Origin: Epithemia pelagica | Lineage: Eukaryota > Protista > Bacillariophyta | Reading direction: 5' to 3' | Assembly: GCA_946965045.2 (NCBI GenBank) | Contig: OX337229.1 | Location: forward strand, 5,890,001-5,954,000 | DNA: 64,000 nucleotides | Shown here: piece by piece, positions 18,564 through 30,794 of the stretch | Layout: each line of letters opens with the position of its first letter | Numbering within the stretch: position 1 is the stretch's first letter | Notes under the pieces: model-generated | Databases searched by the model: none | Told to the model about the DNA's origin: nothing | Seen by the model: only the letters and a program-made list of their open reading frames with translations | Position numbers and translations under genes: made by a program

Positions 18564-20791
18564 ATGCAGCAACCCTCGTCGTCCCTGTTGTCCATGGAGG
18601 GACAACGTCCTCCGTCTCTGGACGATTTGGTGATTCAATCGTCCGATACATTGCGAGAAACACAAATTGACATGAAAATACCCGAAGGGTGGTCAGGCAC
18701 CGTACCCATTTTACAAGGTCCCCGAGGACAAGTCGAATCCTCCAATTTGTTAAAAGGAGTACGTGTGTCTTGAGTGTTTTGGTGGTTCGTATCGATTGAA
18801 ACCAAATGGTTGTACTCACACATTTCTATAAATGTGTGCTTCTTGTGTCGTCTGTTTCTTGTTTTCTTGTTCTTACTTTTGTGCGTTCTTTTTCTTTTCT
18901 GGATACGGTCTTTCTCTCTCTCTCTCTTTGCAGTGTTTACGACGAGGGGTTCCTCCCGCACTCCGATGTGCCCTGTGGTTGTCCAACGTCATTCAGGCTG
19001 TTCGTCCGCATCAAGGTCCAGAGGATTGGCATTCCTATCGAACCTTGGGCAAAGTCCAAACTCTCGATCATGCCTATGAAACCCTGTTGCGAACCATGGT
19101 GGTGGGCGAACAAACCACTTCCAACAACAATAACAAGGAGCGTACTCCCAGTGGATCGCACATGGACAAGAACAATGGGACGGAGTCCATTTTTGTCGTG
19201 ACGGAACGATTGTGGAAGGAACGGCCGATTCCTACCTATGGTTTGGTGGCGGGTTCCGAGGCCTATCAAAAAATATCGGGCATTACCGACCGTGGCCGCA
19301 TGGCCTTGAAACGCGTCTTGATTGCTCTGGAACATGTCTTGGGTATTATGGAACATGCTCCCATGGTTCCCACCTTGACAGCTTTGCTCTTGACCACCAT
19401 GTCGGAATCCTATGTCTTTACCGCCATTCGAGAAATGGCGCATGATACCGCTTGGTTTTTGCCCATTTCCAAACGAGAACATGCCGGGTATTGTTGTGCC
19501 TTTCGACGCATCATGTTTCGACTCCATGAACAAACGGCAACCTACCTGGATGATCGAGGCATTTTAGATGTCGACAGTCTCCACTACATTTTTCGAGATC
19601 TCTTTGTCGAGTACGTGGATATGACAATCGACCGATACAGCGATTTTCAGCTGGCATCTCACACACTTGTTTGCCGTCCCCATTGCTTCGTGTCCTATTC
19701 CATTGTACAGTATTTTGCCCTTACGGGCCGTCCAACGCATCATGGATATTTACACGTTGGAAGGTTCCAAAGTCTTGTTTCGGGTCGGTGTGGCCTTGTT
19801 TGTCTTGTACAAACGCGAGGCGGCCGAATCTCTCGTGACCATTTCCAATGCGCAGGATTGGTGGCAGACCCTCAAACACTGGTCCCATCACAAACTCTTT
19901 AATTTTGATGTCGTCTTGCGCAAGGCCTATGGCGTGCATGGTCGGGTCATGCGGACGCAATTTCGATTTCCCAGTCGCGCCATTCTCCAACGCATTGTCA
20001 AGGCCGAAGAATGGCGACTCCAAATGGAAGGCGATGGAGGAACCGACTTGGAGGACGACGCCAACGACTCGGGCTTTCACGGCACGCCCTTGGGATTGTG
20101 TCAACATGACGAAGAGATTGAATTGGCCGGACATTTACGGGAAACCATACAACCCGTCTTGGCCAAACCAATCCCCGTCCGACAAGCATTGGCGTGCTGG
20201 GTCCCTTTGACCATGCGATTGACCAATCTCAATTTACTCTATTCCACCAATTTTCATGGACGGAGTCTCGACATGTTTTATACACGACTGGAAAAGGTCA
20301 AACACTCCATCATTCTCCTCGAAGTGTTGGACGCGGGTACGACCGAACCACCCACCAATGGTTCTTCGTCGACGACGACAACAACAACATCGACTGTCAT
20401 TGGAATGTACGCTTCGCAAGCCTGGCGTATTTCCAGTCAAACCTATGGAGACGGCGAATGTTTTCTGTTTCGGGCCTCCCCTCATCCCAAATGTTGGAAA
20501 TGGCATCCCGACCCCGAAACCGAATTTGATTTGAACAGTCCTTCGGATTTTTCCTCCAATGCCATTATGCATCAATTCATGGTCGGTCAAGCCGGCTTTA
20601 TCTCCATGGGTGGCAATCGAGATGGATCCTGTGGCCTTCGACTCAATGAAGACTTTACCCGAGGAGAATCCGCACCCGCCTCGGGATTTGACAATGAACC
20701 ATTGCATGGTGGCAACAAGAACTCCGTCTTTTCCATTGGACTCTTGGAAGTATATGGATTGGTGCGACAAATCGATGGCAAAGCAGTCTAA
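18564..20791 (+). CDS. Rab-GAP TBC domain + TLDc domain protein (TBC1D24-like architecture), 3 exons
   Basis: Exons 18564-18758, 18934-19610 and 19711-20791. TBC motifs RRGVPPALRCALW and QRIMDIYTLEGSKVLFRVGVAL; TLDc motifs LLYSTNFHGRSL, YGDGECFLF, and FSIGLLEVYG. Confidence 0.88.
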
Positions 20792-21039
20792 TAATACTAT
20801 AGAGAGAGTGCAGTGTGTAAGCTACGAATACCCGCCTCCGTGTCATGGTCTCATGATATGTCCACCGCATGTCGACAAACTGCAGAGAGTCGTTCCATAT
20901 AGGTACCCCTAGGATTGTAACAAACAAAACATGTCCCACTAACAAACACTAATAGAAGTAATAGTACCTTTTCACATCAACTTACGAATGCCGGATCAAC
21001 AAAAATCCGGTCGCTGAACACTAAACAGACACGACGCTT

Positions 21040-24000
21040 TTACTTGGACTCGTCCTCCGTGGTCGTCGTGGTTGGCTGATTGGTATCGTCATTGGCTTGT
21101 TCGAACAGAGCCAGCTCCTTTTGAAACGACAACAAGATGTCTTGCAACCCCGTTCCGCCATCGGCAACCTCTTCACAGAGATCTGCCGCATGGGAAACAC
21201 ACACTTCAAAGAAGTGAGCATCACGGACTCGAGTTTCTTTCCAGTCCACTAATACCTTGGTTTCCGATTCCTCCTCGGCCACCGGGTCCACCGTCTTTTT
21301 GCTGGTTCCCATCCAGGACGTGAACATGCTGGAGCGACCTTCCTCGGGCTCGGCGGGTGAGAGTTCGGCTTGGACGAGCTCGTCAAATTTCACGTCGGGA
21401 CAATAATGAGCACAGGCCTTGTCCAACATGGTGCGAATCCTCGGGACATGGACCTTGATGACTCGTTGGTGCGTGGCAGCCGCACAGGATGGATGAATTT
21501 CCGTCTCCATGCTCGAATACTGAGGCCTCTTGGTCATGCGTTCGTGAAGACTGTCGTCAATCAAGAAGCAGTTTCGCATTTCGGCACAATCAAAGGCAAA
21601 TCGCAGCAAATCAAAGGATTCCTCCGACGAAACAGAAAGGCTTGGATTATCCAATACGGCCTTGTTGAATTGTCCGACACCAAAGGCTTGAAGCATACCC
21701 GTGGCATTCCCGTCTTTATCGTGACCAACGACCTTGAAGGGAGTTGTGGCATCGGCACCTTGATACATGAGGATCAAATCCTTGCCGGCGGGATGAATAT
21801 CCAGCATGTTTTGCGTGATTTCATAAACACCATCCTCAATAATCATGAGGGGCGGCGAGTCGTCGTTCTGTTTGCTCTCGCCCTTGTCGCCATCATTGTC
21901 GTCGTCCTTCTTGGTATTGCGGGGCAAGGCACTGCGAAGAACCTCCCAGGGTGCAAACAGGCGCGCATGTCCCGACGGAACCCAACCCGGCGATCCAAAG
22001 CATTCGACTCGCAACCGTCCCGTGGCAATCCATTGTTCAATATTCACCAACGGTCGCAAGAGATTGACCACTTCCATGACAAAGCCAATATTCCCACAGG
22101 CCAAGACGGTGAGGGACGAGCTCCGCGTCCACTTGGCCAACTCTTCATATTCTTCACTGGACGGTTTGAAAAAGGTGGCCAACCGTTGTCCTCGGGGGGC
22201 CGATAGATTGTGTGTGGTAAAATTGGTGCGGTTGGTTTTGGCCCGTCCTTGCAGGACACTGCTCCTCAAGTCGGAGGTTTTCCCATGTTCACTGCCGGTT
22301 GCCAAGACATCAATGGACAGACGCTGATTGTATCGGGAAATGAATTTGAAATCCGATTGCATGTCATCCGAGAGTGCCTTGGTCATCCAAATGAGCCACT
22401 GGTTGTGCGGATAGGTATTGTCGGAATACAAATTGGTAAAGGGAGAAATGCCCGTTCCCGATGCAAAGTAAATGGTACGGCCTTCATCCAATCGTCGCAA
22501 GACATGAGACTGGTACACTTGCACAATCACCTTGGTACCCGGTTCTCCTCGTACCAACAAGCGAGAGGCGACTCCATCTTCCCATTCATGGACGGTCAGA
22601 TACAGGAATCGGACATGACCGGATCGGCCATTTTGAACGACACTAATCGAATACAAGCGTGCCGTGAGGGGCGTGATACTTTGCAATTGTTCCAGAGAAA
22701 TGTCCCGGTTCGCCATGGTGGCGTGGTCGTCCGAGGCGGCGGCAAAATTACGAATTTGCCCATAGAGGGCAATGTCGTGGACGCGGGGAATTTTGGGGGC
22801 CTTTTCTCCCAAATGGTAATTCAATTGTTCTTGCCACGAACTCAAGTCCTGGACTTGTACTTCGGCATCCGGATTCAAACCGAGCTTGTGCAAGACCAAG
22901 TTGCAAAACTTGTCCCCGACATCTTTCATGTTGCGGGGCAAGATGCGCAAATGATCGCCCAAGGAACACCGCATGCCTTCTCCTTGCAAATCCAAACACA
23001 CACTCCACATGGAGGAATCACCCGTTCCGAGGGGGACGGCCGTTTCGTACAAGCGTGCGGTATGACGGAGATTCCGTCCGGGTCGTTCGGCAAAGCGATC
23101 CCGTTGCGATTCTTGCAGGGCACTCCGAATCCGATCTTCGGTCCGATCCAAGGGATGACCGGAATATCCTCCCATGGTGGCCTGACGTCCGGTCCGGAAC
23201 AACATGGTCATGTATCCATACAATTTGATCAAGTGGCGTCCCAAAAAGCCATTGTCACCGGCAAAGGTTTGCAAGGCATGAGCAAACAAGCCTTGCAATT
23301 CGGGATTGTGCGATTTGCGAATGTACATGTCAATGTGGGTCGTGTGGACATTGTCGGGCGTTTGAATGGCGCGAATAAAGTTGCCCCATCGACGGGGATA
23401 GGCAGCAATGTGTCGGGCCACATCGGCTCCGTGAATGCCGGTAAACTTTTTGCGATTGAAAAAGCAATCCATGAGTTGAAAGACGGGGACCGATTGTCCC
23501 GTACTGGGCGTCACAATCGGCGTCCCATCCGGGGTCACCTTGGTACAGGGCATGGGAATGGCCGTATCGGCAAAGAGACGGGAAAAGACAATGGCATCGG
23601 TCTGGGTCAAATCCGTCGCGGCACCATGATGAGGATTGACTTGGGCAAAGACATCGGTAATGCTTTCCCAAATTTTGCAAATATGAATCAAGGCTTGGGC
23701 CAAGACGCGATCGTCGGCTCGGGCGGCTGCTTCTTGGGCCTCGACACAAAGGAGGGGCAAGAGTGCCCCATGGGCCATGATGAGAAGCATGGCCATGTAA
23801 AAGTGTTGTTCCGATTGATCGACGGGAGGCATGCCCAAGACATTGAGTTGCAATTGATCCAATTGCAAATCATCGACATGATAATGTCCCGTAATGCGTT
23901 TTTGTCGCCAATTGTAGGTACTGTAATCGAGCAGGGTATAAAAGGGCAAATCATAATACTTTTTGCCCGTGCCATCTTCGACATGCCAATTCAAGCGACG

Positions 24001-24780
24001 ACGAATTTGACCCCAGGCATTCAACAAATCTTGTCGCGGTTTCATGCGTTCCGAACCACAATACCAATAGGTTTGCAAGACGGTGCCCACGACGGACGAG
24101 GCTCGCAACAATTCCTTTTCGTTAATGCTTTCCACCGGAAAGGCGGGCATGGCATCCACCTTGGCGCGAAATTGAGTGGGAGAAAACAAGAGACGGTCCC
24201 GAATTTCCTCCACCAACCCATCCCAGGCAACCAAGGCTTCGTGACGGGTCAAAAATTTTTGCAAGGGGGCCTGAGAGGGCATGAATCCATTTTCCGGGGA
24301 CAAGAAGCCATCGTTTTCATGCGTGACTTCTTCGTACAAGATTTGTCGGGCCCGTGAGCCCATGGTATCGTCACCACCACCGGACAAGGATTGACGATGC
24401 CGTGCACCGGGAGACGAATGCTTTTTGCGACTGCTGGAATCCCCCGGCAATCGCAACGTGTGCGTTTGTCTGCCCATGACGACGGCCCTGCTGGATTGAC
24501 CGACAATGCCCAAGAAGGATTCTTGGATTTTGCGACTGCTAAAATCCCGGGTCGACTTGTGCGTCCGAATGGCCTCCTTCAAGGCAATGGCTCGACGTTT
24601 CATGGCACTGGGATTGACCTTGCGACTCAATTCATCCAAGACAGTATCCACCAGTTTGTGAAATTCGGTGCGAAACGATCCATCGCCTTCGGTGGTCAAT
24701 TGCGTCTTTTGCGTATCATCCTTGCGCACCTTGTGGGTTTCGTAGTCCGGGTCGAGGGGTCGACTGCAATTGGCTCCCAT
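21040..24780 (-). CDS. Indoleamine 2,3-dioxygenase-like heme domain fused to an FNR-type FAD/NAD(P)H reductase and a cytochrome b5 domain
   Basis: IDO-like motifs GFLSPENGFMP, YTLLDYSTYNW, TGQSVPVFQLMD, YPRRWGNFI, FLGRHLIKLYGYM and ATMGG. FNR motifs RLYSIS, GVASRLL, FASGTGISPF, VLACG and RVECFG. b5 motif IHPAGKDLILMYQGADATTPFKVVGH. Confidence 0.88.
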   Translation of the reverse strand: MGANCSRPLDPDYETHKVRKDDTQKTQLTTEGDGSFRTEFHKLVDTVLDELSRKVNPSAMKRRAIALKEAIRTHKSTRDFSSRKIQESFLGIVGQSSRAVVMGRQTHTLRLPGDSSSRKKHSSPGARHRQSLSGGGDDTMGSRARQILYEEVTHENDGFLSPENGFMPSQAPLQKFLTRHEALVAWDGLVEEIRDRLLFSPTQFRAKVDAMPAFPVESINEKELLRASSVVGTVLQTYWYCGSERMKPRQDLLNAWGQIRRRLNWHVEDGTGKKYYDLPFYTLLDYSTYNWRQKRITGHYHVDDLQLDQLQLNVLGMPPVDQSEQHFYMAMLLIMAHGALLPLLCVEAQEAAARADDRVLAQALIHICKIWESITDVFAQVNPHHGAATDLTQTDAIVFSRLFADTAIPMPCTKVTPDGTPIVTPSTGQSVPVFQLMDCFFNRKKFTGIHGADVARHIAAYPRRWGNFIRAIQTPDNVHTTHIDMYIRKSHNPELQGLFAHALQTFAGDNGFLGRHLIKLYGYMTMLFRTGRQATMGGYSGHPLDRTEDRIRSALQESQRDRFAERPGRNLRHTARLYETAVPLGTGDSSMWSVCLDLQGEGMRCSLGDHLRILPRNMKDVGDKFCNLVLHKLGLNPDAEVQVQDLSSWQEQLNYHLGEKAPKIPRVHDIALYGQIRNFAAASDDHATMANRDISLEQLQSITPLTARLYSISVVQNGRSGHVRFLYLTVHEWEDGVASRLLVRGEPGTKVIVQVYQSHVLRRLDEGRTIYFASGTGISPFTNLYSDNTYPHNQWLIWMTKALSDDMQSDFKFISRYNQRLSIDVLATGSEHGKTSDLRSSVLQGRAKTNRTNFTTHNLSAPRGQRLATFFKPSSEEYEELAKWTRSSSLTVLACGNIGFVMEVVNLLRPLVNIEQWIATGRLRVECFGSPGWVPSGHARLFAPWEVLRSALPRNTKKDDDNDGDKGESKQNDDSPPLMIIEDGVYEITQNMLDIHPAGKDLILMYQGADATTPFKVVGHDKDGNATGMLQAFGVGQFNKAVLDNPSLSVSSEESFDLLRFAFDCAEMRNCFLIDDSLHERMTKRPQYSSMETEIHPSCAAATHQRVIKVHVPRIRTMLDKACAHYCPDVKFDELVQAELSPAEPEEGRSSMFTSWMGTSKKTVDPVAEEESETKVLVDWKETRVRDAHFFEVCVSHAADLCEEVADGGTGLQDILLSFQKELALFEQANDDTNQPTTTTTEDESK

Positions 24781-25685
24781 GATGGATGCAAATCAGAATA
24801 CTGCCAAGGAAGAATGATATCGCACTCCTTTGCTTCTTGGATGGTCGTTCTCAGCAAGCGGGGGATGTTTCTCTCTGGTAGAACAGAATCCGTCGCTCCA
24901 CTGTCAATTGTCAATATACTATGACTCTCCCTGGTTGTTGTGGTGCCCACAATCAAAACACCAAACAACAAACTCTCTACCGGCTTTGGATTTGCAATCC
25001 CCAAACCAACAATAAACTGCATACAAGAAGACAGGAAAAGGGAGATCGAATATAAGATCTTATGGAGACATGACGATTTACGATGACCCGGCGAACCTGC
25101 CTACTGTTGAAGAGAGAGAGAATAGACAGAGGGAAGAGGGAATGGTGCTACGCGGTGGCGGTGGTAAGACGAGGATGAATTCGAGATGGCGACGACGGCA
25201 GCGAACAGCGAATAGGAGGTATATAATGACCTTCTCTGTGTCAGGAAGGGCTGTATGACGCATGACCCTGCCCATGAGGTAAACAGAGAAACACGCAAGA
25301 AGCAGAAAGAGTAGCAAAATTTTTTATGCTCTTTTAAAGCAAGCACGTGCGTATTGCGTATATCAATTAACGCATGACCCTTTTCTTCATCATACTCAAT
25401 CGCCGCTATGGGCCTCTAAGTCGTGACAACTCGTGATTCATGACTTACGTACTTCGTACTTGTGGGAACGTTCATTCCAAGTCCTTCTCATTTCGTAACC
25501 AGAAACCAGAGTGTTGTTGGCGGACGACAATCGAGAGCGCTCTTGTTGAGGAATACTAAATAATACTAAATACTAACCGAAGAAGCAGAGTATGCTTTGC
25601 TGGTTGCTGTTGTACCCTGGTTTTCTGCTGTGTTCTAATTTCTAATGTCTCCTTCGATGATGAGTAGCAGTTTCGGTTCTACCTT

Positions 25686-29628: not shown

Positions 29629-30549
29629 TTACATGAACTTTTTGTATTCTTCGCTCTCCAACCACGCGTCAAAGGAAATCAACCCTCCAATTTCCTTGTC
29701 ACTGTTGTGTTTGCGAGTCTTGGTTTCGGGCCCATAATATCCGTACTCTTCGAACCACTGAACCATGTTGGCCAATTCTTGCGCGCCCTCAAACAGGGTA
29801 GCAAACGTTGTGGGATCCTCATACTGGACACGACCTGGTTTGCCCAACTTGTGGGAAATCTTGGCGACGATGTCTTCTACCGAAATCGTTTCGACTTGCA
29901 AGAGAATGCTGCGTTGGTTGTACTTGGCTGGATCCTGGGCCGCGGCCAAAACCGATGGTCCCACTCCGGTGGCAACGTCAAACTGACTAAACGGGTGCCC
30001 CTCTTTACCGGGCCATGTCCAGACCAAGGTACCATCCTCCTCGGTTGCCTTGAAGAAGGTAAACCAGTTGGAATAATAGGCCGCTGGTTCGACGGCTGTC
30101 ACGGTCTCAAAGCCGAGAGTTTGGAGATGTTCCCAGGATTCGGCCTTGAGGGAAAAATGAGGAACGTGAATCCTTCCTCCCGAAACCTTGTCCACATTGG
30201 TCAGGGAGGAGAAAATAACGTGTCGGACTCCGGCTTGTTTGGCTTGGTCGAAAATGGCATTGGTGATTTCGCCTTCCTTGGTTCCAATGTCGGGGTCCCA
30301 AAAGTTTACCACCACAAAGGCAATGTCGGCTCCCTCAAAGGCTTTCGAAAGAGACGATGGGTTCTTGACGTCTCCCGCGACCATTTCGACGCCTCGTTGC
30401 TTCAAGGCGTTGGCGGCCGGAGAGTCCACATTGCGACTCACACCTCGGACTTTGAAGGAGGAGGACGACGAGAGAAAGGTATTGACAACCGAACAGCCCT
30501 GGCCTCCAAGGGCTCCAAGGACGGCAATAGTTTTGGGATTCACAATCAT
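29629..30549 (-). CDS. NmrA-like family NAD(P)-binding Rossmann protein
   Basis: MIVNPKTIAVLGALGGQGCSVV, KVRGVSRN, AFEGADIAFVVVNFW, HVPHFSLK, and ELANMVQWFEEYGYYG. Confidence 0.9.
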   Translation of the reverse strand: MIVNPKTIAVLGALGGQGCSVVNTFLSSSSSFKVRGVSRNVDSPAANALKQRGVEMVAGDVKNPSSLSKAFEGADIAFVVVNFWDPDIGTKEGEITNAIFDQAKQAGVRHVIFSSLTNVDKVSGGRIHVPHFSLKAESWEHLQTLGFETVTAVEPAAYYSNWFTFFKATEEDGTLVWTWPGKEGHPFSQFDVATGVGPSVLAAAQDPAKYNQRSILLQVETISVEDIVAKISHKLGKPGRVQYEDPTTFATLFEGAQELANMVQWFEEYGYYGPETKTRKHNSDKEIGGLISFDAWLESEEYKKFM

Positions 30550-30759
30550 GATGATGAGGATGATAATTTGTTGGTGGGTTGATTTAATGTTGGTTTGGTT
30601 GTGGTTGTTTGCGTTTTGTATTTTGTGAGAGCAAAAGAAAAACGACATGGGTCTGGTGCTGGTGCGCGTCGGCGAAAGCGAGGAAGTCCGACTTCCGCCG
30701 CTCCGCACCGTACGACATACTGACGTAGCCGGAAACCTTGACGCTAAATGAGACTTTTT

Positions 30760-30794
30760 GGTGAAGAGTGACAATGACAAGCAACCCACGGAAA
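30760..30794 (+). pseudogene. 5' stub of an LSm10 copy truncated by an insertion
   Basis: gaagagtgacaatgacaagcaacccacggaaa is nearly identical to 28563-28592. Confidence 0.75.

Follow-up and report, generated by a model that had tools for sequence, protein, structure and literature searches.

A diatom gene joins an IDO-fold heme domain to its own flavin reductase module and cytochrome b5: a member of a large family of putative self-sufficient heme oxygenases

Can an indoleamine 2,3-dioxygenase (IDO) carry, within one polypeptide, the electron supply that keeps its heme ferrous? Human immunology has made these enzymes some of the most intensively studied heme proteins, yet the way in which they are kept reduced in the cell is still argued, and their test-tube assays depend on artificial reductants. 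The question is raised by one gene in a stretch of 64,000 nucleotides (nt) from the diatom Epithemia pelagica (contig OX337229.1, positions 5,890,001 to 5,954,000, hereafter the window), whose product joins an IDO-fold domain to a reductase module of the flavin adenine dinucleotide (FAD) type and to a cytochrome b5 domain. We find that this protein is a member of a large and wide family in which the IDO fold is fused to a FAD-b5 chain; a search of the full-text literature, with most subscription journals outside its reach, returned no published study of such a fusion. Tentatively, and with a confidence somewhat short of even, we read the protein as a single-chain flavo-di-heme oxygenase, a self-rescued dioxygenase whose fused chain would keep the IDO heme ferrous or return it to that state.

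The gene is an uninterrupted open reading frame (ORF) of 1246 amino acids (aa) on the reverse strand (21040-24780), with an in-frame stop four codons 5' of its ATG. The original prediction, made from the sequence of the window, had given exactly these coordinates, and had proposed the fusion from a series of short motifs, all of which are present: GRHLIKLYGY (aa 514-523) and ATMGG (534-538) in the IDO domain, RLYSIS (708-713), GTGISPF (775-781), ACG (894-896) and ECF (926-928) in the reductase module, and HPAG (996-999) and GH (1019-1020) in b5. By Pfam, profiles and motifs, its calls of the three domains and of their cofactor ligands were right, but that account overlooked a C-terminal helical domain (aa 1043-1246) and an N-terminus of the acylation type.

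The N-terminal domain belongs to the IDO family, as had been claimed. Pfam IDO (PF01231) matches aa 160-384 with 47.5 bits against a cut-off of 26, and a profile of the family's IDO domains finds human IDO1 (8.6e-35) and IDO2 (1.1e-34) in the PDB. The domain extends further than the Pfam span: an AlphaFold2 model of aa 142-566 has a mean predicted local distance difference test (pLDDT) score of 92.8 and a predicted template-modelling (pTM) score of 0.92, and the domain is placed at aa 148-566. With this model as query, the top 50 PDB matches of Foldseek are all human IDO1 or IDO2 (E ~1e-11, TM 0.75-0.82 by target), and VIA-align superposes model residues 1-425 onto IDO1 10-399 with Z 36-38 and a root-mean-square deviation (rmsd) of 2.6-2.7 A over 355-363 residues. 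Among the matches listed in the sequence and fold searches of this domain, we found IDO1/IDO2 chains only. In the model, the two-lobe IDO fold, with its small and large domains, is complete.

The residues expected around the heme can largely be followed. The segment S263-A264-G-Q-S..F-Q..D274 of IDO1 is recognisable as STGQSVPVFQLMD, and Phe163 of IDO1 aligns with Phe327 in the profile alignment. Both the Pfam and the PDB profile alignments end about 6-10 residues ahead of His516, and a sub-profile of the last 97 residues of the domain has no match in the PDB. Since His516 (in GFLGRH) is invariant in 69/69 aligned family members and the structures superpose from end to end, we take it as the likely proximal heme ligand, equivalent to His346 of IDO1; it lies 50 residues from the end of the domain, and His346 lies 53 residues from residue 399. 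In the loop that follows, Thr535 is invariant and the Gly-Gly pair is mostly kept, the family consensus being VTIGG and the window sequence ATMGG.

The domain that follows is a CysJ/CPR-type reductase module. NCBIfam ties aa 594-799 to CysJ, Pfam FAD_binding_1 stays below its threshold, and a profile built from 14 reductase-module sequences matches the FAD/NADPH domain of E. coli CysJ (1ddg) at 2.8e-54 and the reductases of BM3, CPR and NOS at e-41 to e-44, in alignments that extend to the C-terminal stacking aromatic. Conserved throughout the family, including four diatom proteins, are R708-Y710-S711, G736/S739, G775/G777/P780, C895-G896, E926 and F928, which correspond to the motifs for FAD and NADPH in CPR and to its Ser-Cys-Asp triad. 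As the original prediction had it, no flavodoxin domain, which would bind flavin mononucleotide (FMN), accompanies the module: Pfam gave no such match at E<=1 in the window protein, nor at E<=0.01 in six homologues.

Cytochrome b5 comes next. Both it and the reductase had been recognised, and their limits are here moved to near aa 930 for the end of the reductase and near aa 943 for the start of b5. Pfam Cyt-b5 (PF00173) matches aa 969-1037 with 42.4 bits (cut-off 23.7), solved b5 chains match at E down to 5e-7, and the two axial ligands H996 and H1020 are invariant across the family, which bears out the claim of a b5 with both heme histidines. An acidic insert at about aa 955-972 is specific to diatoms. 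A hydropathy scan gave no membrane-spanning segment outside the buried helices of the IDO domain, and no C-terminal anchor of the microsomal type.

The three recognised domains are flanked by two regions without a Pfam match. After b5, a domain of about 200 residues is present throughout the family; its model has four long helices (pLDDT 82), and Glu1067, Asn1070 and Glu1203 are conserved. We could not find any relatives of this domain by Pfam at E<=10, by Foldseek against the PDB (best E 0.34) or against AlphaFold-DB clusters (best E 0.15, TM<0.35), and an Atlas search returned b5 and own-family clusters only. A di-iron or hemerythrin identity was considered and dropped, as there are no paired ExxH motifs. 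At the other end, the N-terminal extension occurs in the diatom-like clade, where an MG..C..S start is common to P0002, P0003 (from Met11), P0004, P0173 and P0174. The consensus for N-myristoylation is Gly2 with Ser or Thr at position 6, and a nearby Cys may be palmitoylated. The window protein starts MGANCS, with Gly2, Ser6 and Cys5 matching the myristoylation and palmitoylation consensus; its N-terminus is thus a candidate for acylation, and the enzymes of the diatom-like clade are probably tied to the cytosolic face of a membrane through this putative lipid anchor. The coordinates of all features are collected below.

Table 1. Features of the IDO-fusion gene in window coordinates
Feature	Position	Strand	Remarks
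Complete coding sequence	21040..24780	-	1246 codons plus stop, unbroken
Contig coverage of run X2 over the gene	20969..24957	-	Resembles an unspliced transcript with ~177 nt of 5' and ~71 nt of 3' untranslated region (UTR)
N-terminal extension	24340..24780	-	aa 1-147; diatom-like clade only; no Pfam domain; starts MGANCS
IDO-fold catalytic heme domain	23083..24339	-	aa 148-566; Pfam, profile, AlphaFold2 model, superposition
Codon of His516, candidate proximal heme ligand	23233..23235	-	Invariant in 69/69; start of penultimate helix
ATMGG loop motif	23167..23181	-	aa 534-538; counterpart of GTGG of IDO and tryptophan 2,3-dioxygenase (TDO), not identical
CysJ/CPR-type FAD and NAD(P)H module, no FMN domain	21991..23082	-	aa 567-~930; RLYSIS, GVAS, GTGISPF, Cys895-Gly896, Glu926/Phe928
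Cytochrome b5 domain	21655..21954	-	aa ~943-1042; axial His996 (HPAG) and His1020
Family-specific C-terminal domain	21043..21654	-	aa 1043-1246; four long predicted helices

How singular is this arrangement? The idea of a one-off architecture was not borne out, as the family comprises at least 382 clusters at 50% identity and occurs in bacteria, fungi and a diatom-like clade. Full-length relatives came up in a word-indexed search: one in Epithemia clementina (68% identity), two environmental sequences (52-53%), bacterial proteins (about 25%) and one in Rhizoctonia solani. With a profile of the IDO domain, an exhaustive search then recovered 2326 representatives (E<=1e-3), of which 382 pass E<=1e-30 and the best 150 all lie below 1e-84. 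Proteins of the family have named sources such as Cylindrospermopsis, Dolichospermum, a Caldilineaceae bacterium and Phialemonium, and bear generic database names (cytochrome b5 domain-containing protein, sulfite reductase flavoprotein-like, NADPH--hemoprotein reductase). A scan of prokaryotes, with one genome per species and a query from nine bacterial sequences, confirmed 143 loci, the best 80 of which span 11 phyla with Chloroflexota dominant.

We scored architectures in 156 proteins with our own domain profiles. The order IDO-reductase-b5-helical is clean in 76 of them, and in about 95 when split reductase matches or an undetected helical domain are counted; about 30 are proteins of some 700 aa with IDO-b5(-helical) and no reductase, and the remainder are fragments. 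Thus b5 nearly always follows the IDO domain, and the reductase is optional. Some members carry additions: an N-terminal GGACT/AIG2-like (gamma-glutamyl cyclotransferase-like) domain in P0006, P0009 and P0012, and a further C-terminal extension of about 150 residues without a Pfam match in P0005 and P0006. In Limnofasciculus baicalensis, a very divergent IDO-like ORF (L002:3476-4603, forward strand; branch length 5.2) lies directly downstream of a full-length fusion and is perhaps a duplicate in decay, or else a false match.

This distribution bears on how the domains might work together. If b5 were the direct partner of the IDO heme, it should be kept wherever the IDO domain occurs, even where the reductase is missing, and this is nearly always seen. 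An electron path from NAD(P)H through FAD and the b5 heme to the IDO heme gains comparative support: all the domains are there, their ligands are conserved, and b5 is constant beside an optional reductase. In such a path, NAD(P)H would give hydride to the FAD of the CysJ/CPR-type module, the FAD would hand single electrons to the low-spin b5 heme, and this would reduce the five-coordinate heme of the IDO-fold domain, where O2 would bind and an indole-type aromatic substrate would be oxidised. The fused chain may in this way hold the catalytic heme in the ferrous state, or return it there, so that no outside reductant would be needed. Vottero 2006, Maghzal 2008 and Pearson 2010 are reported to have identified cytochrome b5 with a flavoprotein reductase as a physiological reductant of IDO1. 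We infer the loading of the cofactors, the direction and order of electron transfer, the reaction, its substrate and the acylation from sequence.

Several observations weigh against a self-rescued dioxygenase. In the catalytic domain, the strict GTGG motif is absent, being xT(I/M)GG across the family, and the position of IDO1 Arg231 is Pro in bacteria and Ala395 in the window protein, in a profile alignment that is gapped at this point and where a nearby Lys or Arg (WAK/FSR) could substitute. The NAD(P)H subdomain of diatom-type proteins is divergent: Pfam NAD_binding_1 has no match, the connecting subdomain is shorter by about 45 residues, and the Ser-Arg motif for the 2'-phosphate, kept as FSR[ED] in bacterial and fungal members, is replaced by LATG, LQTG, LQTN or LQTE (LATGSE in the window). 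Bacterial gene neighbours of the CBS or receiver-CBS type, described below, hint at regulation or signalling rather than catabolism. Finally, a permanent two-module reductase seems to exceed what rescue would need, as a dioxygenase requires electrons only after autoxidation.

This last point leads to the most serious competitor, in which the wiring is the same but electrons are used at every turnover, the IDO-type heme acting either as a monooxygenase, by the logic of P450 BM3 or nitric oxide synthase (NOS) and comparable to MarE, a monooxygenase of the IDO superfamily, or as a nitric oxide (NO) dioxygenase or nitrite reductase, by the logic of flavohemoglobin. A fused two-module reductase fits such an electron-consuming reaction equally well as it fits rescue from autoxidation. 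Retention of the FAD module and b5 in most members across 11 bacterial phyla is the pattern of proteins that use reductant stoichiometrically, and both the non-conservation of Trp-recognition residues and the lack of kynurenine-pathway neighbours in bacterial loci agree with it. The roughly 30 proteins out of 156 that lack the reductase are easier to understand if electrons are called for only now and then, unless they are supplied by a reductase in trans, and no feature specific to a monooxygenase or to NO chemistry is apparent. We regard turnover-coupled use of the electrons as rather less likely than the self-rescued dioxygenase.

On either account, the nature of the substrate has to be considered. 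The original prediction had allowed for Trp or another indole, and the conversion of tryptophan to N-formylkynurenine is not supported. In IDO1, Arg231, which pairs with the carboxylate of Trp, and the GTGG loop are features of substrate recognition (PMC5700043), and neither is conserved in the family. We could not see any kynurenine-pathway genes, formamidase and kynureninase included, beside the bacterial homologues. According to PMC4217691, diatoms obtain NAD through the aspartate route and have no kynurenine pathway. Given the altered substrate residues and the reported absence of this pathway from diatoms, free L-Trp is an unlikely substrate, and the enzyme probably acts on some other indole or indoleamine.

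One neighbourhood gives a lead as to which. On a metagenome contig that carries a relative at 48% identity, the fusion gene is arranged head-to-head with the gene of an aromatic amino-acid hydroxylase of the pterin-dependent type (Biopterin_H, E 4e-107; L081:51-2338) and also adjoins a plant-type O-methyltransferase (PF00891 plus PF08100). Hydroxylases of the Biopterin_H type and O-methyltransferases are the types of enzyme that make 5-hydroxy- and 5-methoxy-indoles. By tblastn, we found neither gene in the window or in L082-L085, and this single contig is a lead towards hydroxylated or methoxylated indoles rather than evidence for them. A wider and rather improbable proposal would be an unrecognised class of self-sufficient heme oxygenases, which would carry out a reductant-dependent oxidation of 5-hydroxy- or 5-methoxy-indoleamines of the serotonin and melatonin type, or make or destroy a small signal, under CBS/receiver control in bacteria and lipid-anchored at a membrane in diatoms. 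If the indoleamine version held true, this contig would offer a first glimpse of an algal indoleamine pathway.

The neighbourhoods of the best 80 bacterial loci point in another direction. In 38 of the 80, a co-directional CBS-pair gene abuts the start of the fusion gene, with a gap of -27 to +80 nt. This upstream partner (loci L006-L064) is a CBS-pair protein of 147-190 aa or a receiver-CBS protein of about 285 aa; many of those in Anaerolineales include a response-regulator receiver. A RidA/L-PSP gene lies one gene further upstream in 13 Anaerolineales-type loci, all of a single order, and other bacterial loci have adjoining PAS histidine kinases or a cyclic nucleotide monophosphate (cNMP)-binding protein. 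A bacterial metabolic operon was considered and dropped, as CBS or receiver-CBS (38/80) and RidA (13) are the only recurrent neighbours. Such surroundings could fit a heme-based sensor of redox state, O2 or NO, or a generator of a signal, with the C-terminal helical domain, conserved and of no known fold, as output or interaction module, and with the membrane-anchor type of N-terminus in diatom proteins. However, CBS partners often regulate enzymes, the NAD(P)H-FAD module would be superfluous for a sensor, and the catalytic scaffold of the IDO distal pocket is wholly kept (SxGQS..FQ..D, Phe327, Thr-Gly-Gly loop), so that we consider a sensor quite improbable.

Conservation and variation within the coding sequence speak to whether all parts of the protein are in use. 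Among 78 full-length members outside diatoms, 120 columns are conserved in at least 85%, and 79 of these 120 are unchanged in all four diatom-type proteins, every cofactor residue included. The window sequence and the variant recovered in sequencing run X4, a second haplotype or strain, have 33 listed differences within the ORF (a further 21 occur over the compared stretch), 26 synonymous and 7 non-synonymous, with none of the latter in the IDO domain. The fusion gene is therefore under purifying selection. It is hard to credit that the diatom reductase is vestigial, structural or unable to bind NAD(P)H, with b5 reduced by a separate cellular reductase: despite the missing NAD_binding_1 match, the sub-threshold FAD_binding_1, the lost Ser-Arg pair, the deletion in the connecting subdomain and changes at several family-conserved residues of the module, all four diatom proteins keep RxYS, GxxS, GTGxxP, Cys-Gly and the C-terminal acid and aromatic, the loss of Ser-Arg may merely mean a preference for NADH, and only two of the seven listed non-synonymous differences fall within the 364 residues of the module.

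The gene is probably transcribed, and without splicing. Contigs of run X2, a run without a recorded kind that was returned under an RNA filter, cover it at 20969-22815 and 22847-24957 with no splice joints, and the depth of X2 is zero beyond 24975 and low at 20793-20969, between the fusion gene and a neighbouring TLDc gene. A metatranscriptome, X1, contributes two short contigs at 95-99% identity to the gene. Runs X3 and X4 cover the whole region flatly and evenly, as DNA would. Two small differences were seen beside these: in the X4 variant, GGT is inserted in frame behind 21351, within the disordered part of the C-terminal domain, and X3 and X4 both lack 7 nt of the putative 5' UTR, at 24902.

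The surroundings in the window are a convergent TLDc gene, a galactosyltransferase and an NmrA-like gene. The TLDc-domain ORF (19667-20791, forward strand) and the ORF upstream of it (18832-19902, forward strand) are probably exons of one RabGAP-TBC plus TLD gene, since such a gene occupies the same position in Epithemia clementina, where the orthologue of the fusion gene is syntenic. Upstream lie a galactosyltransferase (PF01762; 26500-27945, reverse strand) and an NmrA-like NAD(P)-binding protein (29629-30789, reverse strand), with no obvious tie to the fusion gene. An ORF of 715 aa runs antisense to it (22210-24357, forward strand) and is most likely a shadow ORF of the coding strand. The synteny with Epithemia clementina, the eukaryotic flanking genes and the even DNA-like coverage allow us to reject both contamination by bacteria and a chimeric gene model.

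Where did the diatom gene come from? We built a quick maximum-likelihood tree from 119 IDO domains, which has no root and suffers from long branches. In it, the diatom-like proteins form one clade (support 100) that has a long stem of 1.64 substitutions per site and falls outside the main bacterial group (support 81), without being nested in any sampled bacterial phylum; the fungal proteins lie among the bacterial ones on a long branch. The eukaryotic clade is old and deeply divergent. A second eukaryotic subclade (P0069, P0173, P0112; 46-49% identity) has the same architecture, and its genes are called in two pieces, the first ending right behind the IDO domain and the second, with reductase-b5, starting 150-225 nt further on (L081:4574-4724, L086:2162-2388). 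Such a gap is probably an intron at the domain boundary, unlike the window copy. The suggestion that an intronless gene points to horizontal origin is weak in view of this intron-like gap and of the position of the clade, and the absence of introns in the window copy says little on the matter. As the bulk of the family is bacterial, an ancient horizontal transfer, of unspecified direction and timing, is plausible.

A natural protein with a built-in b5 route would offer a direct experimental system for heme-to-heme reduction of IDO, and is a candidate self-contained biocatalyst for indole oxidation. Since the family is large and wide, and its substrate residues are unlike those of Trp-cleaving IDOs, characterising one member would annotate hundreds of proteins and might reveal new chemistry of the IDO fold. 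In diatoms, which reportedly lack the kynurenine pathway, the gene is a pointer to a hitherto unrecognised role for indole oxidation, perhaps at a membrane.

Compared with known systems, the catalytic domain is closest to human IDO1 and IDO2, with which it shares the full two-lobe fold (Z 36-38, rmsd ~2.7 A), the SxGQS..FQ..D segment, equivalents of Phe163 and Asp274, a His in the place of His346 and a Thr-Gly-Gly loop before the last helix. It differs in sequence (14-18% identity), in the loss of an Arg231 equivalent, in having xT(I/M)GG for GTGG, and at the position of IDO1 Ser167, which is Gln in bacterial members and Met in diatom members. The human enzymes are reduced by a separate b5 and flavoprotein reductase, whereas the window protein has both fused to it, together with an extra helical domain. 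PrnB and MarE, non-dioxygenase members of the IDO/TDO superfamily, illustrate that this fold can host reactions on substituted indoles beyond Trp 2,3-dioxygenation, but are stand-alone proteins.

A NAD(P)H-FAD module fused to b5, delivering single electrons to a third redox centre, is also found in Ncb5or/CYB5R4, in assimilatory nitrate reductase and in a fungal b5-b5 reductase fusion (PMC12462446). These use the small FAD_binding_6 of the b5-reductase type, in contrast to the CysJ/CPR-type FAD_binding_1 with its connecting subdomain in the present family, where the terminal acceptor would be, unlike in any of them, an IDO heme. P450 BM3, NOS and flavohemoglobin, finally, combine a catalytic heme domain and a NAD(P)H-FAD module in one chain, and the family's FAD module is a homologue of the ones in BM3, CPR and NOS (E e-41 to e-44). 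Their catalytic domains are a P450, a NOS oxygenase and a globin, where that of the window protein has the IDO fold, and while BM3 and NOS relay electrons through an FMN domain and flavohemoglobin passes them directly from FAD to heme, the window protein would employ cytochrome b5 as its relay.

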